Shown piece after piece: positions 12,856 through 34,936 of a DNA stretch of 64,000 nt (positions are counted from its first letter, which is position 1; each line of letters opens with the position of its first letter). Source of the stretch: Lepidodermella squamata (lineage: Eukaryota; Animalia; Gastrotricha); assembly GCA_047495785.1 (NCBI GenBank), contig JBLDXI010000007.1, positions 2,790,001 to 2,854,000 of the forward strand, read 5' to 3'. The notes under the pieces were generated by a model. That model was not told where the DNA came from. It ran no database searches and was given only the letters and a program-made list of their open reading frames with translations. The position numbers and the translations under genes were made by a program.

Positions 12856-13860
12856 TTAGAGGAGACGGCCAGCTCCAAGACCAACGAGGCCAGCGTTGCC
12901 GACGAGGCCAGCGCGGTTGAGGCCAAGACCGTTGACGCCGTTAACGCCATTGACACCGAGGAGACCAGCATTGCCAACGAAGCCGGCGTTGTTGACGAGG
13001 CCAGCGTTGCCGAGGAAGGCACCGTTGCCGACGAGGCCAGCGTTGCCAAGGAAGGCACCGTTGCCAACGAGGCCAGCATTGTTAACGCCAGCACCGAGGA
13101 AAGCGCCATTTCCGACGAGGCCGGCATTGTTGACGCCAGCACCGAGGAAAGCACCGTTGCCGACGAAGCCAGCGCGGTTGAGGCCGAGGCCATTGACGCC
13201 ATTGACGCCAACGAGGCCGGCGTTTCCGACGAGGCCAGCATTGCCGACGAAACCAGCATTGCCGACGAGGCCAGCGTTGCCGACGAGGCCAGCACCAAGA
13301 CCGAGGCCGTTGTTGGCAGCCTGCTGAGCACCCTGAGCACCCTGGGCGGCAGCCTGGTTGAAGCCCTGAGCACCAGCGGACTGCTGGGCACCCTGAGCGC
13401 CGGCAGCCTGGGCAGCAGCCTGCTGGGCAGCACCGGCGGCGGATCCCTGAGAGCCCTGGGCGCCCTGAGCACCTCCGTAGGCGAAGCCAGTGTCGAAGTC
13501 GCCGGCAGCCTGCTCGGCACCAGCGGAGGTGCGCTCAGAGGCGGCGAGGAGGGAAGCGGCGTGGTCGTAACGGCCAGCAGCCTGCTGGGCATCGGCGTGG
13601 GTGGCGCCCTGGCCGAAAGCTCCAGCGTGGTGAGATCCCTGGGAACCCTGAGCCTGTTGAGCAGCAGCAGCGGCAGCCTGGGCAGCGTGGCCGGCAGATC
13701 CAGCGGAAGCCTGACCACCCTGGGCGCCACCGTTAGCGAAGCCCTGGGAACCAGCGGCGGCGTTGGCAGCAGCAGCGGCATTGCCACCGAAGCCTCCGAT
13801 GGGGAGAACGCCGGCGTTGGCGACGGCGACTACGCCAAGAAGAACGGCAACCTTGAACAT
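12856..13860 (-). CDS. Secreted Gly/Ala/Asn/Gln-rich structural protein, paralog 1
   Basis: Signal peptide MFKVAVLLGVVAVANA, shared core HADAQQAAGRYDH..., GLVGNA/GNGAFL tail repeats, upstream TATA. Confidence 0.9.
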   Translation of the reverse strand: MFKVAVLLGVVAVANAGVLPIGGFGGNAAAAANAAAGSQGFANGGAQGGQASAGSAGHAAQAAAAAAQQAQGSQGSHHAGAFGQGATHADAQQAAGRYDHAASLLAASERTSAGAEQAAGDFDTGFAYGGAQGAQGSQGSAAGAAQQAAAQAAGAQGAQQSAGAQGFNQAAAQGAQGAQQAANNGLGLGAGLVGNAGLVGNAGFVGNAGLVGNAGLVGVNGVNGLGLNRAGFVGNGAFLGAGVNNAGLVGNGAFLGAGVNNAGLVGNGAFLGNAGLVGNGAFLGNAGLVNNAGFVGNAGLLGVNGVNGVNGLGLNRAGLVGNAGLVGLGAGRLL

Positions 13861-13956
13861 TTTAATAGCTGTTAAAGTGAGCTTTAAAACGGGTTATCGA
13901 CTTGGTGTTTTGATTCGCGGCTGGATGATGATGAACAAACCGTCGAATCGAGCCTC

Positions 13957-13963
13957 TTTTATA
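13957..13963 (-). promoter_or_regulatory. TATA box of paralog 1
   Basis: TATAAAA about 100 nt upstream of the ATG; an equivalent element occurs in the paralogs. Confidence 0.7.
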
Positions 13964-16090
13964 GCCATCAACCTGGTAGAATTCTCGCGAAAACCCCTTT
14001 GGACTTTGCACCCACTATTTGCTTGGTGCAATAATTATTTTGAACTTGCACCGGAATAATGGAACTATCCACAAATTATCGATTCTTCTAATCAAAATCG
14101 ATGTCATCGCTAGTCATGATAGTTCTTGAAGGTTCGAACTAAATTTTTTTTGGCGCATTGAAGCGTAAATTAGGGCCGCGATATTTTACCGAGTTGATAC
14201 GGTGTAGGGCTAATTTAATAAAGTTGCATCATCGCGCTAGCCACAGGTGAGTTGGCACTACGGCAAATATTGCATCAGCCTGGCCACACGCATGGCCAGC
14301 CGTAGCCGTGGAGATGGTCTGTCTCATCTAGTGCATTTTCCGTTACTCGTGGGCTCCGTTAGTAGTAGTATACGAGTACTTGAGTGCAACGTCTGCCTTC
14401 AAACACACCGTCAAGGTCAACTCGGCGGCCTGTATGTAGTGACGGCCACGTGTTTTCGCTCATGGAGTTGGTATTCACGTGTACATCATCAAGTAGAGCC
14501 TTTCTTGTTTAACCCTGTTGAGGGTAGGTAATTGAGAAGAGAGTTGACAGAAAAAAAGAAATTTTTAGAATTCGTAAAATCATAAAAAATCGCTTGAATA
14601 AATTGTTCGAATTAACCGAAAAGTTTACTGGAAGGAAACCGTAATCGAGAAACGAGAAATGACCGCAAGGGTTAGCTTGGAAATATTCTTGGTGTTTGAG
14701 AATTGGAACGCGTCTACTTTCCAACGAGGCTCTGAGAACTCTTAGACTGCTGTTATTCATAAATGGAGCCTGATACCTTGATCAATATTCACGATGATCC
14801 TATCAATTTATATACGACAAGCTCTGCGCGCACCTCGCACTTGTAAAGGTAGCGAATTCCTGGAACTTACCAGCTTCTTCCCATTACCACATCAGTCAAT
14901 AAAATGTAAAAATTGCTGGATTATTCAGCGAGTTTTGTCCTTATTATCGAAGGAACCAGAGTTTTCCCCATCAGATATATTATAGAATTATTTATTTTCA
15001 AACTTTTTGGATAGATTCTTGTTTCCACAGTGAATTTAGCAGTATACGAGGAATGCCGCGGAATTTCATCGTCAGTTAATTTTTCGTGGCGAACAGGCGC
15101 ATTCACATTTTTATTACTAATTAATTGCTAAATTCCTCTGCCGAAATTCTGAAAATAAATTTTCTTTCGATAATTCGCCACAAAGGTTTGAAAATGGGTG
15201 TACCAAGCGCCTACCCTAAATTTAGGGTTCCAGCAATAACATTGAGGTTCCAACATAAAAGTTTGATTTTTCGAGTTCAAGTCATCCTTAGAATCTCAAT
15301 TTCTATGCTAATATCTGTTACGGACACATCTCTCGGCGCTCATTTTACGACCTATAATTCAGCATGCAGAGCCGATATCGATTCCAAGTATCGAGTTTAC
15401 GAATTATTTAACATTATTTGTTTAGATCAAAGTTTAAACGCACACATTTCCTCTTTGTTCATGGTCCATTCTAATATCAAGCAGATTTATTTTGTAAATC
15501 AGCTATGTATTATCGCTCTTTATGTAGCATTAGGCTTGGGGCTTTCAATTTCCTGGCTTTCAAATTGTCGAGGTTCCTTGCGCAAGGTCAACAAAGGCTT
15601 AATTGAAGCCACTATAATAAGGCAGGAGTTCAAGAGTAAAAACACAACTGAGATGATGAATGCTGACATCAGCTAGCTTTTCATATAAGCACCTTCAGTA
15701 TTCAGCTTTCATCTCAAACTATCGAGAATTAGGATTCAACCAAAAACAGACAAGATGTTTGCCTAACGTGCTTCATTTATTGAAAGTTCAAAAGTGATTT
15801 CATGCCGATGAAATAAAATGTAAGCAGCTTTGAGAAACAAAAAAAATGATGGCAGGCAGAGTGATGGAGTGAAACACCGGTTGGTTTCCATTTGTCGACG
15901 CCGCGCTGATGTTCGCGTTCCAGGTCATCGTCCGAGTCGTGCGCTATAGAGCAGAATACATCAGGTACAAAAAATCATTTCCATCCAAAGTGCTTTGGTG
16001 CGTTCAGCGTGAAAAAATTGAGGTAGATGATGGTGTATATAGTTGATGTTGTGCAAATGTTGTTGGTAGACTGGATGTTGCGTGAGCTGT

Positions 16091-17035
16091 TTACCAGGCG
16101 TAGCGGGCGAAGCCGAGACCGCCGAGGTGACCGGCGCCATAGCCGCCGAGATGGCCGAGGTTGGCATTGCCGTAGCCGAGGCCGAAGCGACCAGCTCCGA
16201 GACCAGCGCCATAGCCGAAACCAGCACCGTGGCCGAAACCGTTTCCGAAGCCAAGACCAGCGCCGTAGCCGAAGCCAGCGCCATGGCCGAGACCGGCGCC
16301 ATAGCCAGCACCAAGACCAACACGGCCAGCGCCGAAACCAGCACCGTAACCGAGACCGTGACCAGCGAAGCCAGCGTTAGCACCACCAGCGAAGCCGGCA
16401 GCGTTGGCACCACCGAATCCACCATGGCCGTAGAAGACGGGGGCAGCGTGTTGCTGGACAGCGACTGGCTGGACGACAACGTTGGGCTGCTGCTGGACAG
16501 CCTGCTGGGCGACCTGGTGAGCACCCTGGGCGGCACCCTGGTTGAATCCGTGAGCACCAGCGGCATGGTGACCTCCCTGTTGGCCGGCAGCCTGGGCAGC
16601 GCCGAAGTGGCCGGCAGCAGCCTGGGATCCCTGAGAGCCTTGGGCGCCCTGGGCACCACCGTGGGCGTAGCCAGAGTCGAAGTCACCAGCAGCCTGTTCG
16701 GCGGCAGCAGAGGTGCGCTCAGAGGCAGCGAGGAGGGAAGCTCCGTGGTCGTAACGGCCAGCAGCCTGCTGGGCATCGGCATGGGTGGCGCCCTTTCCGT
16801 AGGCTCCAGCGTAGTGGGATCCCTGAGAGCCCTGAGCGTGATGGCCGTTGGCGCCAGCAGCCTGAGCGTGGTGACCGGCAGATCCAGCAGCAGCCTGGTT
16901 GGCATGGGCGCCGCCCTGGGAGGCAGCGTGGTGGCCGGCGTTTGCGGCAGCCGCGGCAGCATTGCTACCAGCGAATCCGCCGAAACTGGCGTTGGCGACG
17001 GCGAAAGCAGCGCAGACAACGGCGATCTTGAACAT
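16091..17035 (-). CDS. Secreted Gly/Ala/His-rich structural protein, paralog 2
   Basis: Start MFKIAVVCAAFAVANA at 17035 matches the paralog starts; conserved core; GYGAGLG/GHGAGFG tail. Confidence 0.9.
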   Translation of the reverse strand: MFKIAVVCAAFAVANASFGGFAGSNAAAAAANAGHHAASQGGAHANQAAAGSAGHHAQAAGANGHHAQGSQGSHYAGAYGKGATHADAQQAAGRYDHGASLLAASERTSAAAEQAAGDFDSGYAHGGAQGAQGSQGSQAAAGHFGAAQAAGQQGGHHAAGAHGFNQGAAQGAHQVAQQAVQQQPNVVVQPVAVQQHAAPVFYGHGGFGGANAAGFAGGANAGFAGHGLGYGAGFGAGRVGLGAGYGAGLGHGAGFGYGAGLGFGNGFGHGAGFGYGAGLGAGRFGLGYGNANLGHLGGYGAGHLGGLGFARYAW

Positions 17036-17083
17036 CTTTGTGACGTCTACAAGTGGATGGATAAAAGATTGAAAAAGTGAATG

Positions 17084-17117
17084 ACTGACGAATCCCTCTA
17101 ATCCGGTCGCTTTTATA
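17084..17117 (-). promoter_or_regulatory. TATA + initiator core promoter of paralog 2
   Basis: TATAAAA at 17117-17111 and TCAGT at 17088-17084, about 30 nt apart. Confidence 0.75.
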
Positions 17118-17827
17118 CGCTCAACCTTCAAAAACAACATGGACCGCGCGACGCTCCTTGCTAACCGCAGGGCCCTGTTATCTGAGTGCATTACCGTTTC
17201 CGAAATAAATTCCTCAGAAAATCAGAAACATTTTTTAATCTCATTTTATCGAAAGGTAGTCCCAACTAGAGCAAACTCGAAATTCTCTGCAATTCTCTGA
17301 TATTTTCCGATTTTTCGAACATCCCGCTGTTTTAACGGGGTTCTACGGTAGAGCGTGTTGTTTGACAAGGCCTTGTGACCATCTCCGCGCATAAACATAA
17401 ACGCACCAGCTTGTGATCGATGTTTTTTCAACGGTGGCGCTAATTAGTGCCATCTTACAGGCGAACGCTATTCATACGTTTTTTACTCATTTGCACTTGT
17501 ACACGCATGCATTTTTGCTACACACCGGCGATGGCAATCTTGCATCAATGTAAACAACACCGGCTATTTGTCAACATTTGAATAGTGAACGTCTTTGGAA
17601 TAAACATATTACACAGTACTTGCGAGTAAAAAAATTAAACAAATACGTAGCGCATTTTTATTGTTTATTATTTACTTTTTCGCGTAAAAATGTTACAAGG
17701 GTGACATAACATAAAAAGTTTGATTTTGAAGCATTTTGATTTTAATGGCCGAAGTAGAACTGCCTGGCATTGCCAAAGTTGTTGAAGTGACCTCCGCCAA
17801 GACCGAACCCTGAAAAAGTGGCCACTT

Positions 17828-18898
17828 TTATTGAAGATTAAGGCGTTGTAAGAAAGGCAAACCTCCAAGTCTGTTCAAACCGAGGCCCAGGCCAAGTTGT
17901 GCCCTGCCAAGCCCGAGATCGCCGACTGCGACGCGGCCATAGCCTGATCCGAATCTGCCTCCGAAGCCGCTGCCGAAGCCCGATCCGGTTCCAGCATTGA
18001 AACCACCGCCAAAACCTGAGTTTAGTCCCGACCCGATTCCAGCGTTGAATCCTCCGTTAAAACCCGACCCAACGGCAGAGTTGAAACCCCCTGAATTGAA
18101 ACCACCGCCAACTCCAGATCCAATTCCGTGACCAAATCCCCCGTTAGAAACTGATCCTACCCCTGCGTTAACCCCTGAGTTGAAACCACCACCAACTCCG
18201 GATCCGAATCCGTGACCGAATCCGCCTGCATAGTTACTACCGCCTACAGCAATAGGCTTGATGACTGAAGTGTGAAAAAAGAGTTTATACAAAGGCTATA
18301 CATATAGCAGTTGCTACCTACCGTACTGGGCCTGTTGTTGTTGGGGCAATTGCTGCTGTTGTTGCCGTGAAACGATCTGATAACCCTGATTCCCACCATG
18401 CGCCGCTCCAGAATGAGCCGCACCTTCCTGCCCAGCTGCCTCAGCTCCAGCAAACTTGCCAGCTGATGCTTTAGCGCCCTGAGAACCTTGAGCACCCTGT
18501 CCAGTGCCATAGGCGAAACCAGTGTCAAATCGTCCCCCTGAGTTCTCTCCAGCCGCCGAAGTTCGCTCCGAGGCTGATAGCAAGTTGGCGCTATGATCGT
18601 ATCGGCCGGCAGATTGTTCCGCATCAGCGTGAGTTCCGCCTCGTTTGTAAGCGCCTGAAAATTGCGAGCCTTGAGATCCTTCCGCTTGGTGAGCACCCTG
18701 GCCTGCGCCTTGGAAAGTCCCACCAGCAGACCCGGAAACAGCTTGACCCGCGTGAGCTCCAGCTGCCGATCCTGCATGGTTGCCAGCAAAGGCGTCTGCG
18801 GCGCTATTGCTACTGCCGCCTTGATGTAAGTTGATCGGGACTAAGTTTGCATTTGCCAAAGCAAGGGCAGCGAAGAAGGCTGTTGCTGTAATCATCAT
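17828..18898 (-). CDS. Secreted Gly-rich structural protein, divergent paralog 3; exons 18898-18322, 18264-17828
   Basis: Signal peptide and core THADAEQSAGRYDHSANLLSASERTSAAGENSGGRFDTG. A 57-nt GT-AG intron restores QQAQY-VIKPIAV, matching VVQPVAV in paralogs. GFNSG/GFGSG tail. Confidence 0.85.
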
Positions 18899-19629
18899 CT
18901 TCAATTTGTCAACAAATGATGCGAAATGATGCCACTGGGGGAAGAAGACCCATCACAACTTGTTTGCCCGAGATCTCAAGAGCCCTTGAGAACATTTCGC
19001 TCTTTAACGCCTAAGCCGATTAATTTTGACTTGACGGTGCCAAAATACGAAAGCTATCGGCTATTGGTAAAGAGTGACACAAAAGGCCAAGCCGGTGCAT
19101 CAGTATTGGCTGAAAGATGACTGCTGATATCTTAATATCGATTTGAATCCTCACATGAAAAGTTCACTTTTTTACGAGGTGATACGGTAATTATTTAGGT
19201 TCATTGTCGTCGGCCTTGCGCTAAAAACCCACTATGGAAGCTGTTAACAGCAGGCTGTTGCCGCCTGGAGTGGCATCTGTCATACGAGGCTACGTGCGTA
19301 AAAACAGACTACTCGTGCGTTGCGCAGCATTTTTTCGGTTGCACAAAAGTGAAGCGGAATTAAATTGTCCTTCAGCGTTTCCTTTTTTAAATGCAACAAA
19401 CACTCAAATGCAAAATCTGGCCCATCAATGCGAAAAATGATGCGTGGATGAGTTAAACTGGAGTTTTACAATTTTTGGCGCAAAAGCAACACGAATCCGT
19501 TGATCCTTCATGTACCAATTGCGACGAAAAAATAGGAATCTCGAGAATGCACTTGAAGTGAGGGAACAAAATCCAAATTAAAAGTTGCTTATTTCTAAGG
19601 CAACGTCATGCTTTTTAATTCCCGCTCTT

Positions 19630-21314
19630 TCAATACATATCATATTTTGGCCCAAGTGAAGTCTCCCGCATCGGTTTAGGATGATCGTCGAATTGGCAAA
19701 GTGTTCGCGGTAATAAGCGACGGGTAGGCACCAGCGAATAATGAGCAGCTGATTCACCAAATCCACTGAGACTAATAACTAATCGGTCCATTTTAGTAAG
19801 GAAGAGCCAATCGAGATAAGTCTTCGCTCCATCCATCCATAGTTCTTCCTCGCTTCTTCCATCAAGTTCAATTTTATCGATGTGAGAAATTTGACTACGA
19901 TCGGTAGTAATAATTTTGATTGTTTCCGACGAGCTCGCGATGAAGTCCGCCAAGTATAGCTGAAAATCGGCGTAGGCTTGCTCCGAATCAGCTGTAATAA
20001 ATATTGCGACACTTTGCCCCGCGAGATCAAGGAAGTTCAGGATTCGTTTAACCTCTTCAGCTTGACATCGCACGTCATCAGCTTTGTACTCAGCTATTTC
20101 GTCTAAAACTGAAAATTCGGTCCATACAATTCAAGTGGTTGGTTTATCAGTATTTGTTACATCTTAGTCTGGATATGCAGTGTCATAGTCCAACTACTTG
20201 TTGCTGGGTCGGTCGCGATAGTGGGGCTGGTCGGGTTGGTGGGTGTGATTTTTTTTCACACTATGTTAATCAATTGATAGAATCGCGTGCTGCCAAGCCC
20301 CATTGATCCCATTGATGCTATCATATCGAAAATCAGAGCAACACGTAGTTGGACTTTGACTCCGCAAAATCCGGCCTAAGATGTAACTGTTAACTTACGA
20401 AAGCTTCGGTGTTGGATACCAATTTTGATACAGTTCCTCCAGTAATCCATACCGACCGAAGTTGTGATGGTTTTTGCAAATAAGGCTCTCAGTCGTGAAT
20501 TCGGCCTTTCGAAGATCAGCCTTAAAGCTGCGGAGATTGCAATGTTAAAATCATAATTGAATCCAAGTAAGCCGGGGGAAAATGTCTCGAAATTGTCCTT
20601 GAAACCCTCGTTCCAAAGCACGCCGTCTAATCCAGCATGCCGATTTGACCATAGCTTCAAATATTTAAATCTCTCTGTTTCATTCAATAACGTCTCCCTC
20701 TGCATGAATGCAGAATAGTTTTCATTTAACAGTTCGTCATGATGTGATAACAGCTTGGTCCTGCTTTCGTTGTATGGTTCGGTGAAAGTTTGCCGGAATG
20801 TGGCAGCATCCACCTGGTAAAAGTGTTCGTTCACTTGAAAATAATCAGCAACATCACCAGGTTTATTCCATTCGAAGTTGAACACCCGATTCGAGCCAAT
20901 TGCGAGGTAGAGGGCGATGACAGAGCCCCTGAGACGATCCCCAAGGCCGTTGCAATTATGATGATCAGGCCTTAGGCAAATCCTGCGGCCTGGAGGTATT
21001 GCCGGATACATGAAATCGAAGCATGCAATATTTTGAGGCAATATGGATCGTTTACAAAACGAAGTTGCAAATTTAACATCATAGGTAGATTTCTCCTTGA
21101 ATTCAGCTGCCACTCGAGCTATGTAGTTTTCTTTGATGGACTTGGCAACAGCGATTGCCTGAGCTTGACGAGCTGATAGTCTGCGGATTTCAAAATCTGA
21201 AAACAGATCATCGTTGTCGCTAGTCGAGCTTTCCTTAACGTTGGTGTATAACAGGAGCAATAAACCTAAAACTGTGATGATAGCAAGATATTTCGTGGCA
21301 AGCTGGCTATGCAT
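19630..21314 (-). CDS. Type II membrane fucosyltransferase-like glycosyltransferase (GT-B, GT23/GT37/NodZ-like); exons 21314-20399, ~20102-19630
   Basis: N-terminal TM anchor and motifs NGLGDRLRG, KIGIQHR, IFITADS, LDWLFL...SLSGFG typical of the alpha-1,2/1,6/O-fucosyltransferase clan. GTAAGT donor with an in-phase acceptor. Confidence 0.75.
20182..20360. mobile_element. MITE-like element in the glycosyltransferase intron
   Basis: 24-bp inverted repeats (20182-20205 / 20337-20360, 2 mismatches); no clear TSD. Confidence 0.55.
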
Positions 21315-22040
21315 TGAACAATTGCCACATTGTGAAGGGGCTGTTATACCTGGGGAAGAGTAAAGAAACACGTAACGCTACATTCTCACCTCTTTTATTT
21401 ACAAATGTTCTTGGATCTATTGTTACTATTACTCGGCTCTTGGATGAACGCAAAAGAGGATCAAACATAAGGTCTAAGCAGTCTTAACACAATAGCGACC
21501 ATGTTGTGATCATTATATCTCATGTTCAGAGCTAGCCATGGTCTATTTCGGGGTGTATCAATACCACCAATAAAGAAGTCACCAATGCCACCAACGGCGG
21601 TTCTCATCTTTCATCTTTTAGCTTGACACCGTCTAGGGCAAGTACGAAATCATGTGTGAACGGTGGAGTTGTGTTGGCTATCTTCAATCCATTAGTGTTT
21701 TAACTGTTATTTACAAACAGGTATCCCAAGTGCCTCCAATCTTACAAGGTTAGATTGCTGCAAGGCTACGTTGGGATATCAACATCCCACATAATTTCTG
21801 GAAAATTCGTTAATAATGGCTACAACAGCCAAATGGGATTGGCAGTTCTCGAATTTTGGTTCGAGTCCATAATCCCCAGATGAGCAGACTTGCTTCAAGG
21901 TCACCCGTACTGAAAAAGAGGGCATGTTGGTGATATTCGACGGCAACAGACCAATCCTTAAAAATGAAGCAGAAAAAATGAAGCGAGTAACGATATTGAC
22001 ATTTTATCTTGAGTAACAGAACATCAACAGGTCACAAAAA

Positions 22041-23240
22041 ATGACAGTCATATTCCAAATTTTAATATTGTATCTTTTTGTCATCGAATCTATTTACGCA
22101 CCAGCCGCCCCAAAAGTGCCCGCCGCGAATGCCGTTATAGTACAACAGCGGTTATCTAACGACACCAAATGCGTAAGGATTCAGTCGAAATCGAAGCAAG
22201 AATATCTCAGGCTGGAATGCGACAGGATCCCGGAGGGAACTCCAATGACTGCTGGCGGAGGAAATTATATTTTTGAGGGGACTAAAGCGGTAGGCGATGG
22301 AATGCAAGACTTCTACGTTCTCTTAAACACAACGAGCAAGACGGCTCTCATCGAATCTGTCATGTCACGCGGGCGCTTTCTGCGGGTTGATTGCGCGACA
22401 TTGCGAATCAATTGCCAATCAGGTGTTGGCCGCAGTGAGACATTCAGTTACGAAACGAACTCTGATAACTCCTTATCTTTTTACTTTGGGGAGGGCACTT
22501 CAAAACGATATCTTACCGTTGGGAAAACCGTCTGCACGAAGAATTTAGCCACGCCTGGGCAAGCGGAGTCGTTCTTCTTGCGCAATGACTGCAAGCCGCC
22601 ACCACCTAAAACCACCACCGCAGCTCCCACTACTGCGAAAGCCGATTCTGTTGGTGCAGGCACAACCAAAGCTGGTAGCAGTAACGCGGGTGCGACCACG
22701 GCTAAGCCATCTGGCACGACATCTGGCACGACAGCAAAGGGATCTGATTCGGGCACCACGACTAAAGCTGGCGCAGCCACCACAAAACCGGGAGATGCTC
22801 CGCCAGCAACTACTGCAAAAGCGTCTGATACAACAACGACAAAAGCTGGACAAACCACTGCTAAGCCGGCGGATGCTGCGCAAACTACCAAGGCCCCTGA
22901 CTCCGCTGCTACAACTAAAGCCGCGGAAACTACAACTAAGGCTGGTGATGCCGCGACAACAACGACTGCCAAGGCCGGGTCAGAAACTACCACGACTAAG
23001 GCTGCCGATACTACAACCACCACGGCAAAAGCTGGCGAAACTACCACGACTAAGGCTGCCGCGGCTACAACCACCACAGCTAAGGCTGCCGATACCACAA
23101 CCACCACAGCTAAGGCGGTCGATACTACAACTACTACAGCTAAGGCTGCCGACACCACAACCACCACAACCACTACAACCACTACAACAACTAAAGCCAC
23201 TCAGGCTGCGCAAACCACTACCACAGCTAAAGCCGGCTAA
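22041..23240 (+). CDS. Secreted fascin-like beta-trefoil protein A with Thr/Ala/Lys mucin-like tail
   Basis: Intronless; signal peptide; YLRLEC, FLRVDC, INCQSGVGRSETF; about 210-aa tail of TTTTAKAAD-like repeats. Confidence 0.8.
   Translation: MTVIFQILILYLFVIESIYAPAAPKVPAANAVIVQQRLSNDTKCVRIQSKSKQEYLRLECDRIPEGTPMTAGGGNYIFEGTKAVGDGMQDFYVLLNTTSKTALIESVMSRGRFLRVDCATLRINCQSGVGRSETFSYETNSDNSLSFYFGEGTSKRYLTVGKTVCTKNLATPGQAESFFLRNDCKPPPPKTTTAAPTTAKADSVGAGTTKAGSSNAGATTAKPSGTTSGTTAKGSDSGTTTKAGAATTKPGDAPPATTAKASDTTTTKAGQTTAKPADAAQTTKAPDSAATTKAAETTTKAGDAATTTTAKAGSETTTTKAADTTTTTAKAGETTTTKAAAATTTTAKAADTTTTTAKAVDTTTTTAKAADTTTTTTTTTTTTTKATQAAQTTTTAKAG
22612..23237 (+). repeat. Coding tandem repeats (T)nAKA(A/G)D/E
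   Basis: Degenerate units of about 27-30 nt (e.g. actacaaccaccacagctaaggctgccgat). Confidence 0.9.
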
Positions 23241-23833
23241 ATGCCGCAGTGTGGCAGCTTACAAGTTACAAAATCCGAGTGGACTCCTTGTTATACTAAC
23301 TTTTATTTGAGGCTCTTGAAAGAATAAAAGTAATATAGGTAACTGCAACCTGCAACAAACTTGGGAAGCAACATTGCATTAAAACACATTTTTCCAGTCT
23401 GGCGAGACAAGTTGCACTTCCCTGAGTTTTTAAGCGATTATTTAAATGGGGAAGGCCAGACAAGTTAACAGTTGCCGGCTGTCGGTGTTCAGCATTGATT
23501 AGGAAAACTATTGAATATAAGTCAGAGTGAAATAATATTGCTTAAATTGTAGAGTTTGCCAAGTGAGTTCGTTGACCTGCTCATTTTTTTATTATTGATT
23601 GCACGAAAATTGGTGATGACTTAAAGAAGGAGAACAAATGTCGATCTCTGACTAATTATGGTGTAGAGTCTGTCGAATAACTCCGAAACTTTTTGGAGTA
23701 TTTAAGCAAGAACTCGAGCCCACGTTTCTTAGAAAACCTGCATGAAGTCGTGCAGATGCGTGGTTCAAAAGAAAACACCCTTTGTTGAGTCGTGGTTAAG
23801 CTGCAAGCGTGCTACTTCTCAAATTTTGCTCAA

Positions 23834-25087
23834 ATGCCAAGAATAGCCTTTATTCCATCCATATTAATTTTAAGCGTCTTATTTTCTCTAGTTCAATCTC
23901 AAGAAAAGGGTAAAATCTACGCTTTCGAATCAGCAGCTCATCGCGGTCGGTATTTGCGTCTCGATTGCGTTGGCTATAACGCCAATCTGCAACAAGGGTG
24001 GGGGCCATGGGAAAGGTTCTATATCATCCCTCGTCAGAACAATTCTCTGGCACTAGAATCCGTAGATAATCCTGGACGCTTTGTGACATCATCGTGTCCG
24101 AGTTATACATGTGGCCGGGGTGATTCACAATCACGCGATCAATTCGTACAGGAAACCAACGATGACGGAACAATTTCTTTCAGGCAGAGAACAACGGCAA
24201 TTTATCTTGGTGTTATGGGCGCAGAGAATTTCAACCAGTTTAGTTCCAGCGGCGGAGGTTACTCGGCTTGTCTGCTGGAGAAAACTATATTCGCTAAATT
24301 TTTTCTCACTGAAATTGGCACGGCTGCAATAACGGACTCCAACTCTACTTCACCTGGGCAGCTCATCGAACTCACTGAAAGACCAGGGTCATTTTTCGAA
24401 GCAGACTGCAGATCAGTCACTAAACCGGAAGGTGACGGCGGGGGTCGCTTTGGCATCTCAACGACTGTAAGTTCACTTAGTGAGTTCATCATGGCTAAAG
24501 ATGACGATGGCTTGTGGTCGATTCAAACGACCAGCCCTAAGGGTCGTTATCTTCGCGGAGATTGCAATAGCGCAACATCGCGATTAAGTGGGACTGTCAA
24601 CTGTCAGTATGGATTAGGGCCTTATGAGAAATTTGTTCGCGAATTCAATGCTGATGATGGATCTTACTCGTTCCGTTCTTACTCATTTAGTGCTTATATT
24701 GGTTCGGATGGTGTTAGCCTCAGGTGCAGAGCTAACAAAACTTCAACAGAAAGATTTTGTCTCCGAAACAGGCCGCAAGCAAATGATTCTGTTGAAGTTC
24801 CTTTTACGACAATCACCCGCAGCACCGCCTTCACCCCGACCCTTCTAACTCCTAGTACTACTGCATCAATCTCGACGAAATATGTTTTCCCAACAACAGC
24901 TGCTTCAGCTGCTGTGAAAAATGCTGAAGTTGTTGTTAGCGAAACAATGCCCATTTCTTCCACGGTCGAAACTGTTCGCAGAACAACAAAAGACAACAAC
25001 AGTTCAAAAAACTCTTCTGGTACTATTCATTCCTTTGTTGTTGCCCACATCTTAATTTGTTATTTTAAGAGAGCTATTGTGTCGTAA
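23834..25087 (+). CDS. Secreted, possibly GPI-anchored, double fascin-like beta-trefoil protein B
   Basis: Intronless; signal peptide from MPRIAF; repeats YLRLDC..NLQQGWGPWERF and YLRGDC..VNCQYGLGPYEKF; S/T-rich stalk; hydrophobic C-terminus. Confidence 0.8.
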   Translation: MPRIAFIPSILILSVLFSLVQSQEKGKIYAFESAAHRGRYLRLDCVGYNANLQQGWGPWERFYIIPRQNNSLALESVDNPGRFVTSSCPSYTCGRGDSQSRDQFVQETNDDGTISFRQRTTAIYLGVMGAENFNQFSSSGGGYSACLLEKTIFAKFFLTEIGTAAITDSNSTSPGQLIELTERPGSFFEADCRSVTKPEGDGGGRFGISTTVSSLSEFIMAKDDDGLWSIQTTSPKGRYLRGDCNSATSRLSGTVNCQYGLGPYEKFVREFNADDGSYSFRSYSFSAYIGSDGVSLRCRANKTSTERFCLRNRPQANDSVEVPFTTITRSTAFTPTLLTPSTTASISTKYVFPTTAASAAVKNAEVVVSETMPISSTVETVRRTTKDNNSSKNSSGTIHSFVVAHILICYFKRAIVS

Positions 25088-25180
25088 ATTAAAGAACAAG
25101 GAAATTGAACAAAAAGCCTATTATAGCTGGATAATTTCTCCAAGACAGCGTGGGTGCACTTTGAAAGACTTTAAAAAAAG

Positions 25181-26125
25181 ATGGACTCTTACATCCATTT
25201 GCTTTTCCTGTTGCAGCTTAATTTGCTGCTAATTTCAGTGACAGCGCTGAGTTTTGATGGTTCTAAAGTCTACTCTTTTGAATCCGGGGCTTATCGCCGT
25301 CGGTTTCTACGGGTTGAATGTGGCGTTGCTGCAAACCTACAAACTAGTGCAGGGCCGTGGGAACGATTCAAAATTACAACCAAAGCAAATGGCTTATCAA
25401 CTATTGAGTCTGAGTTCTTCACTGGTAACTACATTAGCATTGCAGGCTCCATTCAAAATCGGCGAATTGAGTGCAGTGATTGGTTGCCTGGTGATAACGA
25501 GCTGTTTGTGATCGAGAGAAATGCCGACGATACCTTTTCAATCAAAAATCGCGCGGCGAATTGCTATCTCGCTGCGTATGGAGGCGAAACCCAGGCTAAC
25601 CCAGGAACCCCAATCGGTTCTATAATATGCGCTGCTACTAAAACTCTCAACAGCAAATTTTTCATGCAAGAAGTTCCGATGTCGCCAACTTCGAGCCCTA
25701 CAACAACCAAAGTTCCCGAGCCTATTTACTTCGTGGAAAGTTTTGCGAAGAGGAACAACTTTCTTCAAGGCGATTGTGGCGCGGTGGTAAAGTATAACGG
25801 TGCCGGCGGCGGAAGGTTCTTTGTCTCTGATAAGCCGAGATACGATTTCTCGACCTTCATCGCTGAGCCGACTGATGACGGTCTATGGACTCTCCAACCT
25901 GTCAAAGCTAAAGGCCGATATCTTAGGATAGACTGCGGTGGAACGATCAATTGTCAGTTCGGTGTAGGGCCCTGGGAAAGGTTTCATCTCGAATTCAATG
26001 CTGAAGACGGAACATATTCTTTCAAATCGACTGATTACAACAAGTATCTTGGCATCACAGATTCCGGACTCGGCTGTAAACCTAACAGAACAAAAACTGA
26101 AAAATTCTTACTGAAACTCATTTAA
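25181..26125 (+). CDS. Secreted double fascin-like beta-trefoil protein C
   Basis: Intronless; signal peptide; NLQTSAGPWERF and YLRIDCGGTINCQFGVGPWERF; clear paralog of protein B without the stalk. Confidence 0.8.
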   Translation: MDSYIHLLFLLQLNLLLISVTALSFDGSKVYSFESGAYRRRFLRVECGVAANLQTSAGPWERFKITTKANGLSTIESEFFTGNYISIAGSIQNRRIECSDWLPGDNELFVIERNADDTFSIKNRAANCYLAAYGGETQANPGTPIGSIICAATKTLNSKFFMQEVPMSPTSSPTTTKVPEPIYFVESFAKRNNFLQGDCGAVVKYNGAGGGRFFVSDKPRYDFSTFIAEPTDDGLWTLQPVKAKGRYLRIDCGGTINCQFGVGPWERFHLEFNAEDGTYSFKSTDYNKYLGITDSGLGCKPNRTKTEKFLLKLI

Positions 26126-26394
26126 AAACAAGTCATTTGTTAAGCATTCATTGACATCTTTATTCAACTTGAATTTTCCGTTCAAGACAACTTATGAAAA
26201 TATTATTTGACTTTTCCGAAACTTGTTGTCACCCGGAGCTGGCCGAGGTCACATATTGAAGACTTTACGAGAAGGCGGCGAATCATAAGACCACTACCAA
26301 ATCATGCTGTCAGAAGGCTAAGAAAGAGTTGAGCGTGCGAGGTGAGGTAGAGTGCTGCAGGTAACGGGGGTGGCTTGCTGGACTGTTTCTTCGT

Positions 26395-27717
26395 TTAGTA
26401 GAAGAAGCCACGGCCATAACCGAGGTTGTTGCCACCGAAAGCCCATCCGTTGCGGCCAAGACCGCCGAGGAAACCACCGAAACCGGCATTGTGGCCAGCG
26501 TTGACGTTACCAGTGTTGAAGCCATTGAAACCAGCACCGAAGCCAAGGCCGAGGCCAAGACCGTTGACGCCGTTGGCACCACCGAAGCCCTGAGCACCAC
26601 CAAGGTGAACACCGTTGGCAGCACCGAAGCCACCGAAACCAGCGCGCTGGCCAGCGTTGACGTTAGCAGCGTTGAATCCACCGAATTGGGAACCAGCTCC
26701 GTAGCCAAGACCAAGGCCGCCGAGGCCAAGACCGTTGACACCGTTGGCAGCACCGAAGCCCTGGGCGGCACCGAGGTTGACACCGTTAGCAGCACCGAAG
26801 CCACCGAATCCACCGAAACCAGCGCGCTGGCCAGCGTTGACGTTGGCGGATTGGAGACCACCGAATTGGGCACCAGCAGCACCAAGACCAGCACCATAGC
26901 CGAGGCCAAGACCAAGACCGTTGACACCGTTGGCGGCACCGAATCCCTGGGAAGCACCGAGGCTGACACCGTTGGAAGCACCGAATCCACCGAATCCACC
27001 GACGCGGCCAAGACCGAGACCGAGACCAGCGCCATAGACTGGGACACCACCGAAGAGACCAGCGCCATATCCCCAACCACCATGGGCAGCGATGGGCTGC
27101 TGGACGGCAACGGGCTGCTGGACGGCGACGGGCTGGACAACAACCTGGGGCTGTTGGCGGACGGCCTGTTGGGCAGCCTGCTGGGCACCCTGGGCGGCAG
27201 CCTGGTTGAATCCGTGAGCACCAGCGGCCTGCTGGGCACCCTGTTGACCGGCAGCCTGGGCAGCAGCCTGCTGGGCAGCGGCAGCCTGGGATCCCTGAGA
27301 GCCCTGGGCGCCCTGGGCAGCGCCGTGGGCGTAGCCAGTGTCGAAGTCACCAGCAGACTGCTCAGCGGCAGCCGAGGTGCGCTCAGAGGCGGCGAGGAGG
27401 GAAGCAGCGTGGTCGTAACGGCCAGCAGCCTGCTGGGCATCAGCGTGGGTGGCGCCCTGGCCGAAAGCTCCGGCGTGGTTAGATCCCTGGGATCCCTGGG
27501 CGTGGTGGCCATTGGCGCCAGCAGCCTGGGCGTGGTGACCGGCAGATCCAGCGGAAGCCTGGTGGCCATTGGCGCCACCGTTCGAAGCAGCCTGGGCAGC
27601 GTTGGCAGCATTGGCAGCAGCGCCACCAAATCCACCGCCAAAACCGCCGAAACCGCCGATGAATCCGCTGGCGTTAGCCGCGGCAACAACACCGAGGAGA
27701 ACAGCAAGCTTGAACAT
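26395..27717 (-). CDS. Secreted Gly/Ala/Asn-rich structural protein, paralog 4
   Basis: Signal peptide, conserved core, GFGAANGVN(L/G) repeats, ends GRGFFY. Confidence 0.9.
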   Translation of the reverse strand: MFKLAVLLGVVAAANASGFIGGFGGFGGGFGGAAANAANAAQAASNGGANGHQASAGSAGHHAQAAGANGHHAQGSQGSNHAGAFGQGATHADAQQAAGRYDHAASLLAASERTSAAAEQSAGDFDTGYAHGAAQGAQGSQGSQAAAAQQAAAQAAGQQGAQQAAGAHGFNQAAAQGAQQAAQQAVRQQPQVVVQPVAVQQPVAVQQPIAAHGGWGYGAGLFGGVPVYGAGLGLGLGRVGGFGGFGASNGVSLGASQGFGAANGVNGLGLGLGYGAGLGAAGAQFGGLQSANVNAGQRAGFGGFGGFGAANGVNLGAAQGFGAANGVNGLGLGGLGLGYGAGSQFGGFNAANVNAGQRAGFGGFGAANGVHLGGAQGFGGANGVNGLGLGLGFGAGFNGFNTGNVNAGHNAGFGGFLGGLGRNGWAFGGNNLGYGRGFFY

Positions 27718-27758
27718 TTTCTTTTGAAGATGTAAGTAATGAAATTGAGAGGCTTGAG

Positions 27759-27796
27759 ACTGATGGTTTAGATGTAAAAACGCGGCTGCTTATATA
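27759..27796 (-). promoter_or_regulatory. TATA + initiator core promoter of paralog 4
   Basis: TATATAA at 27796-27790 and TCAGT at 27763-27759. Confidence 0.75.
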
Positions 27797-29847: not shown

Positions 29848-30190
29848 TAAGTAAGTGCGCGACAACTTGAGTGCGCGACAGTCACGCTATTGCACGCGAC
29901 AATCGCGCCTGTGTTCACTGACTCCCGACAATGTCGCACGTCGCGAGTGTCGCATCAGTGTTGCGCGCCTGTCGTTGCACTGCTATTTACAAACTAGAGC
30001 TTGAAACAATGCGCGCGTTGAACTGTTGGGCGCGCACTTGAACAAAAGAAATCGTCGCGAGCTCACAGTTTGCGGTGTCGCAGGTCCCGTTTTAGCGGAA
30101 CTTCGGCCGCGCGACAGGCGGAAGTCATCGCAAGTTACTCTTGTAATCAAACTGCGTCAAGATTCAGTCTTGTCGAGCCACTTATACTTA
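29848..30190. repeat. Possible degenerate MITE rich in CGCGACA/TGTCGC motifs
   Basis: Imperfect terminal inverted match taagtaagtgcgcgacaa / ttgtcgagccacttatactta and many internal (c)gcgaca copies on both strands. Confidence 0.4.
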
Positions 30191-30656
30191 TTTGTTGATC
30201 GACTAAGTAAAACTATGGTTGCATTATGATCATTCAACTATCTGCAGCCACAAGATGTCTCTTCGAGTGTTAACTTGAATTTAACCTTCGAAGTCAGGGT
30301 TCTTGGGAAACATTTCCTCATTTTCTGCTGCCTGCTGATTCTGAAACCTCAAAGTTATAAACAAAAGTCAGATTTTTCTTGCCGTCATGCAGTCTTTTTT
30401 ATTTGCCTTTACTTTCCTTTCAAGATTGCCTCAGCGACACAAAGAACAAACTTGACAAAAAAAGCGCCGTCTTCCGGAGCTGGCCGGGGTGCATGCATGA
30501 TGACTCCACAGAAAGACAAACATTCAGTTTCAAACTAAAATTCACCGATCCGCAAAGTCAACGTGCGAGAAAGGAATTGAGTGAACACAGAGAAAGAAGG
30601 TGCGGGGAATGGGAGAGTGCAGTAGGAGGGTTGGACTGGCTTGGTTCGTTCTTTGT

Positions 30657-31868
30657 TTACAAGAAGAATCCGCGGCCATAACCGAGGTTGTTGCCGCCGA
30701 AAGCCCAGCCTTGACGACCGAGACCGCCGAAGCCAAGACCGTTTCCGTAACCAGCGCCATAGCCGCCGAGGCCAGCGCCATAGCCGAGGCCAAGACCGTT
30801 GACGCCGTTGGCGCCACCGAAGCCCTGAGCAGCACCGAGGTTGACACCGTTGGCAGCACCGAAGCCACCGAAGCCAGAGCGCTGACCAGCGTTGACGTTG
30901 GCACCCTGGAATCCGCCGAACTGGGAACCAGCTCCATAACCAAGACCAAGACCGCCGAGGCCAAGACCGTTGACGCCGTTGGCGGCACCGAAGCCCTGGG
31001 CAGCACCGAGGTTGACACCGTTGGCAGCACCGAATCCACCGAATCCACCGACGCGCTGGCCAGCGTTGACGTTAGCACCGCTAAGACCGCCGAACTGGGC
31101 ACCAGCAGCACCAAGACCAGCACCATAGCCGAGGCCAAGACCGTTGACACCGTTGGCAGCACCGAAGCCCTGGGCGGCACCAATGTTGACACCGTTGGCA
31201 GCACCGTAGTTACCACCATAGGCGGGGACTCCACCGAAGAGACCAGCGCCATATCCCCAACCGCCATGGGCAGCGACGGGCTGGACGGCGATCTGCTGAA
31301 CCTGGGGCTGGTAAGCCTGCTGGGCAGCCTGCTGAGCACCCTGGGCGCCAGCCTGGTTGAATCCCTGAGCACCAGCGGCCTGCTGGGCACCCTGTTGACC
31401 GGCAGCCTGGGCAGCAGCCTGCTGGGCAGCGGCAGCCTGGGATCCCTGGGAACCCTGGGCGCCCTGAGCACCACCGTAGGCGAATCCGTTGTCGTAGTCA
31501 CCAGCGGACTGCTCAGCAGCAGCCGAGGTGCGCTCAGAGGCGGCGAGGAGGGAAGCAGCGTGGTCGTAACGGCCAGCAGCCTGCTGGGCATCAGCGTGCT
31601 GAGCACCCTGACCGTAGGCACCGGCGTACTGGGATCCCTGGGAACCCTGAGCGTGATGACCGTTGGCACCAGCAGCCTGAGCCTGGTTGCCGGCAGCGCC
31701 GTTGGAGGCCTGACCACCCTGAGCGAAACCGTTGGAGGCAGCCTGGGCAGCAGCGTTGGCGGCGTTGTTGGCAGCAGAACCACCGAAGTTGTTGAGGCCG
31801 AAGCCACCGACGAATCCGCTGGCGTTAGCGGCGGCGACGACGCCGAGAAGAATGGCAACCTTGTACAT
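30657..31868 (-). CDS. Secreted Gly/Ala/Asn-rich structural protein, paralog 5
   Basis: Signal peptide, conserved core, tail nearly identical to paralog 4, ends GRGFFL. Confidence 0.9.
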   Translation of the reverse strand: MYKVAILLGVVAAANASGFVGGFGLNNFGGSAANNAANAAAQAASNGFAQGGQASNGAAGNQAQAAGANGHHAQGSQGSQYAGAYGQGAQHADAQQAAGRYDHAASLLAASERTSAAAEQSAGDYDNGFAYGGAQGAQGSQGSQAAAAQQAAAQAAGQQGAQQAAGAQGFNQAGAQGAQQAAQQAYQPQVQQIAVQPVAAHGGWGYGAGLFGGVPAYGGNYGAANGVNIGAAQGFGAANGVNGLGLGYGAGLGAAGAQFGGLSGANVNAGQRVGGFGGFGAANGVNLGAAQGFGAANGVNGLGLGGLGLGYGAGSQFGGFQGANVNAGQRSGFGGFGAANGVNLGAAQGFGGANGVNGLGLGYGAGLGGYGAGYGNGLGFGGLGRQGWAFGGNNLGYGRGFFL

Positions 31869-31941
31869 GGTTATTTTCAGTTGTTTAACTGTAAATACTT
31901 TGAGGCTGGAGACTGGTGACTACTGCCTGAAATTCGCCAGC

Positions 31942-31948
31942 TTATATA
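31942..31948 (-). promoter_or_regulatory. TATA box of paralog 5
   Basis: TATATAA about 75 nt upstream of the ATG. Confidence 0.7.
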
Positions 31949-33813
31949 GCCAACGCCAGACTGCTGAATCTACTACCCGCAGTGTAACCGAATATCATGT
32001 TATGTGTTTTGTCACCGGTGCACTTTTCCCAACTCGATTTTCACCACAATGTCCCAGCCCATCGATCGGGAACCCTTGCATCAGAGCTCCGGGCGTCCTA
32101 TAACCCTGCTAGGGAGGTCTCTATCAAATTTTTGAAGGTCGAAGTTTTCGACAGGGTACTAGGTGTTTTAACGAGTGGCTACGGTTGTCCAGACTTTGTC
32201 GTCGTTTTTGCGCGCTCTGCATGGCAAAAAACGCGATGGTCGAAGATAACAACAACTTAACGTGGCGCATGTGGCCGGCCACACCAATAAAGGTGCTGGC
32301 GTGAGCTCGCCGGTTGCCGGCCTCCGAGGGCCCTCGTGCGGCCACCATGTTTCGCGCCTTGTATTTGCATATATAACATATAACCTCCAATATTATTATT
32401 TCAAACCCACCATCGGCGTACACGCGCATAAACACGTTTTTTTGCATATGTTGATAGGCTTCGGCACGCGCTACACGGCCCGGTGCTGCTTGACTCTGCC
32501 GCGGCCATTACGTTAGTGTTAAGCGGCCACGGCGATTAGGAAAATTGCCGTAATACAAATTATACCTAGAATTTTGTCCTTCAGCAGCTTTACATTGTTT
32601 AAACCCCGGTTATATGACGCTTATCTTGTTAAAATTAAAGTATCACGCTCTGCTTACGTGTGTTGTTTTAAGCCGGATGAAGCATAATAAAAAAATTGAC
32701 CGACATTGCGTTCGCTTTTTTGTCAAATAATGGTTTATTTTATTTCTCATGAAAAATAAAGCACTGGGAACAGATCGCGAAAATTGTAATAAATTGTCGA
32801 TCAGTTCAGGCAAATTGAAGTGTGTCGATTCGACCTCCGATTCGATATAGGCCTTGCTCGCGCATTTTGAGGTGTTATCTTTTACTCTCTCCGGAATTTC
32901 GGAAAGTTATTCACCTTTTTTCATTTCAAGGTTAGCTTCATTTCAGTGGGCGACCCTAAAATTTGGGGAGAATAAAAAACAGCCTTGCCTTTTTTGCTGG
33001 AAAAAATTTAATCATTGACTCAAATTTTTAATTCAATTTTTTCATTTGTTAGCAATTTTTTGCTTGATTTAGGTTAAACTTTGTTTTTCTTTCTGGTCAA
33101 ATCTTGGGTTCTCTCCAAGAGCGGCTTATTTTCACGGCGTGCGAAAGCTGGGATTAAGGTGACCGCTATACCGATAATATCCCTCGCTGAGCCTCGGGGA
33201 TTAGCTTCAAAGAGGTTAAAACATCAAACATTCAGCTCCTTTTGGGTTGGCACGACAAACACCATAGAAAATTAGAAAAATACCTGGATTCAAGCTTGAA
33301 CATAATAATATGCATATAAAGCAGGTTCACCTTTTTTACCGATAATTCAAATTTCTTGGAAAATCAACTCAAATGAAACCGAAGGGTTAAAATGTTCTAG
33401 AATTGTGGAGTGATATGGATTATTAGGCTCTTAAACAGTTTCAGTTGAAACCAAAAATGGTGGGAAAATTTGATTCATTTACATTCATTTTTCTCGATTT
33501 CATTGGATATTATTGTGTTATTAAAATTTCGAAAAATAAATCGCCTCAAGTTCCCAAGTCCAACGTCCTCCATCCGGAAAGGCTTCGGCTCGGAGACAAA
33601 AACGGAACAAGTATTTTGAAAAATTCATTGCCTTTTTATTTTTAGCGATGTTTTTTCAACACCGCCGATCTTCGATCCGAAATCTAGGCTACTCTTACAT
33701 AGTTTGGAAAACGAATCAACGTTGGTGAAATATTTCAAACGGGCTACGATAGGACTTTGAGTAAATAATGTTCTTCTCAGGCAGTGATAGCAGGGTTTGA
33801 GAATAGCGGCTGC

Positions 33814-34855
33814 TTAACCGAGGAAGGCGCCGTTGCCAACAAGGCCGGCGTTTCCGAGGAAGGCACCGTTGCCGACGAGGCCAGCGTTGCCAGCGAAGCC
33901 AGCGCGGTTGAAGCCAAGACCGTTGGCGCCGTTGACGCCGAGGAGACCAGCGTTGCCGAGGAAGGCGTTGTTGCCGAGGAAGGCACCGTTGTTGACGCCA
34001 GCGCCGAGGAAAGCGCCGTTGCCAGCGAAGCCAGCGTGGTTAAGACCGAGGCCATTGACGCCATTGACGCCAGCGAGGCCAGCGTTGCCGCCGAGGAAGG
34101 CACCGTTGCCGTAGCCATAGCCGAGGTTGGCACCTCCGAATCCGAGGTGGCCAGCGCCGAGGTTGGCAGCGCCATAGCCGAGACCAGCGCCATAGCCGAG
34201 GCCAAGACCGTTGGCACCGACGAGGCCAGCACCAAGACCGAAACCGTTGTTGGCAGCGTTGGCAGACTGGGCGGCGCCGTTGGAGGCAGCCTGGTTGAAT
34301 CCGTTGGCACCAGCGGACTGCTGGGCACCCTGTTGGCCGGCAGCGTTGGCAGCAGCCTGGTTGGCAGCAGCGGCGGCGGATCCCTGAGAGCCCTGGGCGC
34401 CTTGAGCACCACCGTGGGCGAAGCCAGTGTCGTAGTTGCCAGCGGCCTGCTCGGCACCAGCGGAGGTGCGCTCAGAGGCGGCGAGGAGGGAAGCGGCGTG
34501 GTCGTAACGACCAGCAGCCTGGTTGGCATCAGCGTGCTGGGCACCCTGGCCGAAAGCGGCAGCCTGCTGAGATCCCTGGGAACCCTGTTCGCCGAAAATG
34601 TCTTAAAAAAATCCGATTTTTCTATCGAATTTGTCTCACCTGAGCCTGGTTGGCGGCAGCAGCGTTGGCAGCAGCCTGGTGGCCGCTGGCGGCGCTGGCG
34701 GCGTTGCCAAAGTTGGCACCACCGTTGGAAGCGGCGTTGGAACCGAAGTTGGAACCGAAGTTTCCGAAGCTTCCACCGAATCCGCCGAATCCTCCGAGGG
34801 GGAGACCGGCCTGGGCGACGGCGAGAACAGCGGCGAGAACGGCGACCTTGTACAT
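33814..34855 (-). CDS. Secreted Gly/Ala/Asn-rich structural protein, paralog 6; exons 34855-34640, 34584-33814
   Basis: Signal peptide MYKVAVLAAVLAVAQA. A 55-nt GTGAGA..AACAG intron restores AQ-GSQGS; conserved core; GNGAFL tail; in-frame TAA at 33816-33814. Confidence 0.88.
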
Positions 34856-34900
34856 TTTCTGGTTGATTTTACAACTTGAAAATTAAAACTACCAACGTTG

Positions 34901-34936
34901 AATGAAATTTAGCACTGACCATTCGCCGCTTTTATA
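34901..34936 (-). promoter_or_regulatory. TATA + initiator core promoter of paralog 6
   Basis: TATAAAA at 34936-34930 and TCATT at 34905-34901. Confidence 0.7.

Follow-up and report, generated by a model that had tools for sequence, protein, structure and literature searches.

The fibroins of spiders and insects join Ala/Gly repeats to a small, conserved module that is not repetitive and in which charged and His residues could govern storage and assembly, and the mass-produced, self-assembling chorion proteins carry variable Gly/aromatic repeat arms around a central region. In Lepidoptera, chorion is encoded by many tandem paralogs that have this central region in conserved form (PMC13252134), and the low-complexity cuticular proteins of arthropods are built of Gly/Tyr repeats with GYR-like motifs (PMC2932725). 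A further class, that of silk-like structural proteins (SLSPs), was delimited by the SilkSlider rule, i.e., a secretion signal together with an 80-aa window containing at least 25% Gly (McDougall, Woodcroft and Degnan 2016, PMC4944945), and the majority of SLSPs are reported to have originated independently, each in one lineage of animals (PMC4944945). Here, we analyze a stretch of 64,000 nt (the window) from the gastrotrich Lepidodermella squamata (GenBank assembly GCA_047495785.1, contig JBLDXI010000007.1, positions 2,790,001 to 2,854,000 of the forward strand), in which positions 12856–34855 contain six paralogous genes, labeled g1–g6, that share a conserved segment referred to below as the core. 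Our preferred reading, to which we give slightly better than even chances, is that these tandem paralogs form a lineage-restricted, mass-produced, and largely disordered family of secreted silk-like proteins that builds an extracellular material.

The core occurs exactly six times in the window, always on the minus strand, as found both by tblastn with the core and in the lists of open reading frames (ORFs). An earlier interpretation made from the letters alone (hereafter, the sequence-only reading) had described six co-oriented paralogs with a succession of leader, arm, core, and tail, and both features were recovered in each of the six genes. According to the alignment, the proteins start with a hydrophobic leader of 16–17 aa that ends in A-N/Q-A, followed by an arm rich in Ala, Gln, Gly, Asn, and His, a core of 74 aa between QGSQGS motifs, a stretch rich in Ala and Gln, and a tail composed of Gly with aromatic and aliphatic residues. 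A Pro/Val/Gln linker lies between the A/Q-rich stretch and the tail in g2, g4, and g5, and in weaker form in g3. The cores of g1, g2, g4, and g6 are 85–88% identical to that of g5, and the g3 core is 69% identical. The description of six alike copies was accurate for all genes except g3, a clear outlier that has extra charged residues, ordinary codon use, and introns, and lacks a TATA box. The two introns of g3, of 57 and 53 nt, are predicted from the sequence: they have GT..AG borders, keep the frame, and yield a C-terminus resembling those of the paralogs. The start of g2 was set at the Met of the signal peptide rather than at the upstream ATG of a longer ORF. In the paralog tree, which is mostly unresolved, g1 and g6 form the sole pairing.

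Ten members of the family were available for comparison, namely g1–g6 and four relatives from environmental sequences that are described below (P0001, P0002, L003, and L004). In all ten, the leader has a length of 16–17 aa, a mean Kyte-Doolittle hydropathy of 2.1–2.8, and an ending of the type A-N/Q-A or similar, and in an AlphaFold model of full-length g5 it forms a separate helix with a predicted local distance difference test score (pLDDT) of 92. Judged by this heuristic, the leaders are of the signal-peptide type, and the proteins look secreted. The leader is accompanied in every member by a maximal Gly fraction of 0.30–0.47 in 80-aa windows, which places ten of ten proteins among the SLSPs under the SilkSlider rule. 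Like other SLSPs, they are repetitive, modular, compositionally biased, and lineage-restricted. Membership is claimed for the compositional class only and not for any homologous family; the class is defined by composition with no homology implied, and a conserved acidic helical core, such as the one found here, is not part of its definition (PMC4944945).

The mature chains of g1–g6 contain 26–29% Gly and 14–26% Ala, no Cys, no Met, and 0–4 Lys (0–1 outside g3). In five of the six paralogs all acidic residues, five or six in number, are located within the core, and g3 has 6 of its 11 there; the earlier description of Cys-free chains with nearly all acidic residues in the core therefore stands. 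Outside the core, charge is almost absent. The C-terminal half is hydrophobic, with Leu, Val, Phe, and Tyr alternating with Gly and Asn in regular repeats. These tandem-repeat tails differ among paralogs: units of 18/36 nt are found in g1 and g6, of 18/36/54 nt in g2, and of 174–186 nt in g4 and g5. The tail of g1 consists of about 25 hexapeptide units (GNAGLV / GNGAFL), and that of g4 of approximately 2.6 units, each of roughly 60 aa. A single Arg occurs once per 58–62-aa unit in g4 and g5. The tails of g1 and g6 (12856–13330 and 33814–34240, respectively) share a pattern of about 25 Asn-rich hexapeptides, [V/L/F]-G-N-[A/G]-[G/A]-[L/F], which from its sequence would be compatible with a beta-solenoid or cross-beta array.

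A tandem cluster of secreted, Gly/aromatic-rich proteins with fast-changing tails could also encode precursors of glycine-rich defence (antimicrobial) peptides, for which the tandem NLP/CNC genes of nematodes and the glycine-rich peptides of spiders and insects provide comparison systems; the recurring Arg of g4 and g5 could then mark cleavage sites. However, the proteins are 314–440 aa long and near-neutral to mildly basic (isoelectric points of 6.3–9.3), they have almost no Lys and no adjacent basic residues that might form dibasic sites, and their most conserved part is the acidic core and not the Gly-rich part. Furthermore, the codon bias of five genes and the transcript depth of g5, both given below, fit a bulk product. 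We regard a defence role as improbable.

Expression was assessed for g5 and g6, to whose region (30400–35000) four public sequencing runs were aligned. Run X1, whose record merely guesses "RNA", contributed 4885 contigs. Their summed depth is about 1e5 over g5 (30400–31939), approximately zero in the 1.5-kb spacer (31940–33480), and 5e2–1e4 over g6. One contig skips 55 nt at 34584/34639, with borders CT..AC on the plus strand, i.e., GT..AG on the minus strand, exactly as in the predicted intron of g6; another one ends at 31917, about 25–30 nt downstream of the g5 TATA box; and one loose end equals, in reverse complement, a sequence that we take to be the SMART cDNA primer. Since the depth is limited to genes, the g6 intron is removed, one end lies next to the TATA box, and a loose end resembles a primer, X1 is cDNA. 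Run X2, which carries a different organism label, covers genes only. In run X19, coverage is even throughout, about 100 deep, which is the behavior of DNA from a related strain. Finally, the freshwater metatranscriptome X14 contains pieces of the g5 core region that are approximately 94% alike. The splice and the gene-limited coverage in X1 demonstrate expression of g5 and g6 from the minus strand, in agreement with the orientation given by the sequence-only reading.

The regulatory signals have the same orientation. A TATA box is situated 79–103 nt upstream of the ATG in g1, g2, g4, g5, and g6, with none in g3, and AATAAA follows the stop codon by 72–309 nt in all six genes. Besides the TATA box, no 7–10-mer was common to four of the five TATA-box promoters. 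The genes are real and lie on the minus strand, five of them are TATA-driven, and g6 is spliced as predicted. The trivial explanation, namely that the ORFs are chance products of low-complexity, GC-rich repeats or decaying copies, draws on the long ORFs that each copy has in several frames of either strand, as expected of low-complexity DNA. We consider it hardly credible: splicing reads correctly on the minus strand only, cDNA-type coverage is confined to the genes, the TATA boxes and AATAAA signals are well placed, the core is under purifying selection (see below), and four complete relatives exist elsewhere.

Long antisense ORFs on the plus strand, rich in Ser, Thr, Glu, and Ala, mirror the family genes at 12844–13875, 16082–17080, 26491–27735, 30600–31919, and 33784–34866. 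Because the intron, the TATA boxes, and the polyadenylation signals fit the minus strand only, these ORFs are by-products of the biased composition.

The g5 region also shows sequence variation. Within 30400–31900, about ten single-base variants are present near 50% depth in X1, and in each of these positions X19 shows 100% alternative base, which points to two haplotypes, or copies that are nearly identical, within the X1 sample and to fixation of one of them in a related strain. In the g5 tail (30816–31216), contigs that skip 318 or 160 nt, with a few letters replaced, were observed in both X1 (cDNA) and X19 (DNA). Their probable source is alleles or paralogs (g4, for example) that have another number of repeats, and they would thus reflect copy-number variation of the tail.

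Codon use separates the same five genes from their surroundings. In g1, g2, g4, g5, and g6, the codons are almost exclusively GGT/GGC/GGA, GCT/GCC, CAG, and AAC, whereas g3 and the neighboring genes use codons otherwise. In g5, all Asn codons are AAC, 96% of Gln codons are CAG, and GGG, GCA, and GCG are absent. Such bias is expected in genes with very high expression, and together with the contig depth in X1 we take it as a sign of mass production, of g5 above all.

The ratio of nonsynonymous to synonymous divergence (dN/dS) in the core is 0.13–0.39 at dS of 0.17–0.60 among g1, g2, g4, g5, and g6, and in comparisons with g3 dS is saturated at dN of about 0.23. Hence, the core is conserved by purifying selection and not merely because of a young age. 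The A/Q-rich stretch after the core is far less constrained, with ratios of 0.3–1.4. The dS of the core is below that of the N-terminal arm, which may leave some room for gene conversion or an effect of codon bias. The tails, in contrast to the conserved core, turn over through changes in their tandem repeats.

Searches for known families gave consistently negative results. In Pfam, no family was found at E<=1 for g1–g6, except for a sub-threshold collagen match of g1. A profile search of PDB sequences gave no match to the core, and queries of the ESM Atlas with a whole protein and with the core returned nothing usable, the nearest clusters being arthropod cuticle-like with a weak score of 0.78. 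A full-text literature search with three core or tail peptides yielded nothing, g1 and g5 were absent from protein collections on exact look-up, and an Rfam scan of the window had no match. A search seeded with words from the region of the g5 core had protein P0001 as its sole hit. When 1.84 billion representative proteins were scored with a profile of the core, P0001 (E 2e-25) was joined only by P0002 (E 5e-12) and by the 2138-aa repeat-rich protein P0003, a match that was judged spurious.

P0001 and P0002 are encoded on two contigs of a single ENA metagenome, where their neighbors are other low-complexity genes and an intronless gene of a Cys-loop channel. A back-translated scan of JGI metagenome contigs added two more complete relatives, L003 and L004, on contigs of about 1.2–1.3 kb. 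All four retain a leader, a core between QGSQGS motifs, and a tail of Gly and Tyr, and none has a name or a Pfam family. L003 and L004 end in a GLGYGR-type motif, as g4 and g5 do. No described family was thus matched by the core in Pfam, PDB sequences, the ESM Atlas, or the 1.84 billion proteins, and the earlier statement that the core was not recognized as a named domain agrees with these searches. The proposed lineage specificity agrees as well: the family, whose known members are confined to the present genome and a handful of environmental fragments, looks lineage-restricted on present sequence records.

Several genes near the environmental relatives were inspected. Beside P0001, a Gly/Ala-rich gene (L001, 489–1475, plus strand) contains two faintly core-like segments (AAGYDREQTVLAAEEETRA); it was tried as a distant two-core relative, but its match to the core is weak (hhalign probability 22%). 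On the same contig, the gene at 2156–2722 (minus strand) encodes a Pro-rich protein with GYAS repeats. Conserved synteny was rejected: the type II membrane ORF at 20376–21371 of our window is unrelated to an ORF of similar appearance beside P0002 in L002, and neither of the two has a Pfam family.

The core is modeled as a short Ala-rich helix; its charged residues comprise two Arg and six acidic ones, and it also has three or four His. AlphaFold2 predictions for the core segment, made with eight sequences, have a mean pLDDT of 46 and give one long helix. In the full-length g5 model, a helix of moderate confidence is predicted at residues 94–122, QQAAGRYDHAASLLAASERTSAAAEQSAG, with block-mean pLDDT of 77 and 75 for residues 101–120, followed by a second, A/Q-rich helix at 142–176 (pLDDT 63–70) and a tail with pLDDT of about 35. 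Neither the core-segment models nor the full-length g5 model contains a globular fold. The term "core domain" was therefore an overstatement, as the models contain no folded domain and only one helix, flanked by conserved QGSQGS motifs; what stands of the sequence-only reading is that the proteins look secreted, are Cys-free, have silk- or cuticle-like composition, carry an unrecognized core, and look restricted to a lineage. Its further parts, a solid material whose assembly the core would nucleate and whose mechanics the tails would tune, are proposals.

Mostly disordered proteins whose N-terminal half is hydrophilic, rich in Ala, Gln, Gly, and Asn, and modeled as low-confidence helices might instead serve, without bearing load, as a soluble or gel-forming secreted coat, a lubricant, or a protectant against desiccation or freezing. 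The apparently very high expression and the origin of the relatives from environmental metagenomes and a freshwater metatranscriptome would suit such a role. We nevertheless think it unlikely, as the C-terminal half is hydrophobic and aggregation-prone, with regular repeats, and has almost no charge; known protectants such as proteins of the late embryogenesis abundant (LEA) type are charged and rich in Lys and Glu, unlike the tails of g1–g6.

Among the described systems, lepidopteran chorion is the closest analogue in design, sharing the many tandem paralogs and the conserved central region. Its centre, however, is a beta-serpentine amyloid nucleated by a hexapeptide, whereas the core described here is charged, Ala-rich, and modeled as an alpha-helix (block-mean pLDDT of about 75), and hexapeptide periodicity is seen in the tails of g1 and g6 but not in the core. 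No sequence match to the Pfam chorion models was found. With the low-complexity cuticular proteins of arthropods, the family shares Gly/Ala/Tyr repeats, and several members end in GYGR-type motifs. The QPVAVQQP linker recalls the AAP[AV] motifs of cuticle proteins. At that, the Pfam search detected neither Chitin_bind_4 (the R&R consensus) nor any other cuticle domain, and the profile search of 1.84 billion proteins revealed no homolog in annotated arthropod proteomes. Fibroins resemble the family in combining Ala/Gly-rich repeats with a small conserved non-repetitive module, but the modules of spidroins are terminal five-helix bundles in proteins an order of magnitude longer, whereas the module here is internal and modeled as a single helix. 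Our best reading of these comparisons is that the likeness of the family to moth chorion or low-complexity cuticle proteins is one of analogy and not of homology.

Two further classes were tried and rejected. The sub-threshold collagen match is limited to g1, at 12.9 bits against a cut-off of 27.2 (E=0.098), and the tail periods are 6 or about 60 aa and not 3. Coiled-coil silks of bees, ants, and hornets have a long helical region with heptad (3.5-residue) periodicity of apolar or Ala residues. Here, spectral power at periods of 3.4–3.8 exceeded the 95th percentile of shuffled sequences in only one of 14 region tests (the N-terminal half of g4), and the helical moment was weak.

The reading as a building block of secreted material is thus preferred because of the signs of bulk production, the hydrophobic regular tails, the confinement of charge to the core, and the diversification of tandem paralogs. 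The exported products would build or coat a material such as an egg cover, a jaw or cuticular part, a tube, or a glue. The hydrophobic Gly/Asn/Leu/Val/Phe/Tyr repeat tails may provide the cohesive bulk, either beta-rich or elastomeric, and the core may order or trigger association as a specific site of contact, acting by self-pairing, by docking to a partner (perhaps a polycationic one), or as a pH or metal switch based on His and Asp. Several points weigh against this reading. The contig depth behind the estimate of very high expression is a poor measure of expression, and the RNA check is limited to g5 and g6. The products could stay soluble. Since Cys is absent and Lys nearly so, covalent cross-links of the usual kinds would have to rely on chemistry based on Tyr or His. 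Lastly, the core helix is only weakly amphipathic (hydrophobic moment muH <= 0.25) and no consistent heptad pattern is present in the N-terminal half, so that self-pairing of the core is not predicted from sequence.

A more specific version of the building-block reading, which we put forward as doubtful, is that of a new biomaterial system in which the acidic, His-bearing helix acts as an assembly switch responsive to pH, metal, or a polycationic partner and controls deposition of the hydrophobic Gly/Asn tails, with the arrays of g1 and g6 forming beta-solenoid or cross-beta fibres, the whole system being confined to a poorly sampled invertebrate lineage.

The orphan family found here is new and expressed, and its conserved module is undescribed, but the kind of protein is well known. 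If the building-block reading is true, the family would add another independently invented building protein of the silk or chorion type, from a lineage for whose secreted materials no other molecular description was found in the literature. The compact design, a 74-aa conserved module with exchangeable tails, no Cys, and almost no Lys, would make possible a recombinant study of how a helix governs Gly-rich assembly. As only four environmental proteins were matched in total, the core profile is a specific marker of the lineage for environmental sequence data. No long-standing open question is touched, and lineage-specific low-complexity structural families are common. The coordinates of all features are collected in Table 1.

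Table 1. Genes, cores, and signals of the g1–g6 cluster, in positions of the window.
Feature	Position	Strand	Remarks
g1 coding sequence	12856..13860	-	intronless, 334 aa; ORF, alignment, 18/36-nt tandem repeats, strong codon bias
g1 core, 74 aa	13438..13659	-	alignment
g1 TATA box	13957..13963	-	promoter sequence
g2 coding sequence	16091..17035	-	intronless, 314 aa, His-rich (8%)
g2 core	16622..16843	-	alignment
g2 TATA box	17111-17117	-	82 nt upstream of 17035
g3 divergent paralog	17742..18898	-	predicted exons 18898-18322, 18264-17863, 17809-17742
g3 core	18470..18691	-	69% identical to g5 core
g4 coding sequence	26395..27717	-	intronless, 440 aa; ORF, alignment, tandem repeats
g4 core	27286..27507	-	alignment
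g4 TATA box	27790-27796	-	promoter sequence
g5 coding sequence	30657..31868	-	intronless, 403 aa; abundant cDNA-type contigs, codon bias
g5 core	31437..31658	-	alignment
g5 TATA box (TATATAA)	31942..31948	-	promoter sequence
g6 coding sequence	33814..34855	-	exons 34855-34640 + 34584-33814, 328 aa; run X1 coverage
g6 intron, 55 nt	34585..34639	-	GT..AG on minus strand; spliced out in cDNA contig
g6 core	34375..34584	-	begins at first codon of exon 2
g6 TATA box	34930-34936	-	promoter sequence
g6 AATAAA signal	33635..33640	-	X1 coverage drops just downstream

Genes for secreted beta-trefoil proteins (fascin- or ricin-B-like), mostly intronless, are located between and beside the family members, at 22041–26125 (plus strand) and 37149–39316 (minus strand); the former encodes a long tail that is mucin-like and rich in Thr and Ala. 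These genes do not have the family's TATA arrangement, and co-regulation with the family is therefore not indicated. Also inside the cluster, 19630–21371 (minus strand) encodes a type II membrane-like protein with an N-terminal anchor, in exons of 331 and 147 aa, which has no Pfam family and, from its sequence, could be an uncharacterized Golgi enzyme. In protein searches, neighboring bromodomain exons and a receptor kinase had distant matches only. The kinase gene, at 44305–45681 (plus strand), is nearly intronless and encodes a very divergent TGF-beta/activin type I-like receptor kinase, whose best named matches are only about 28% identical.

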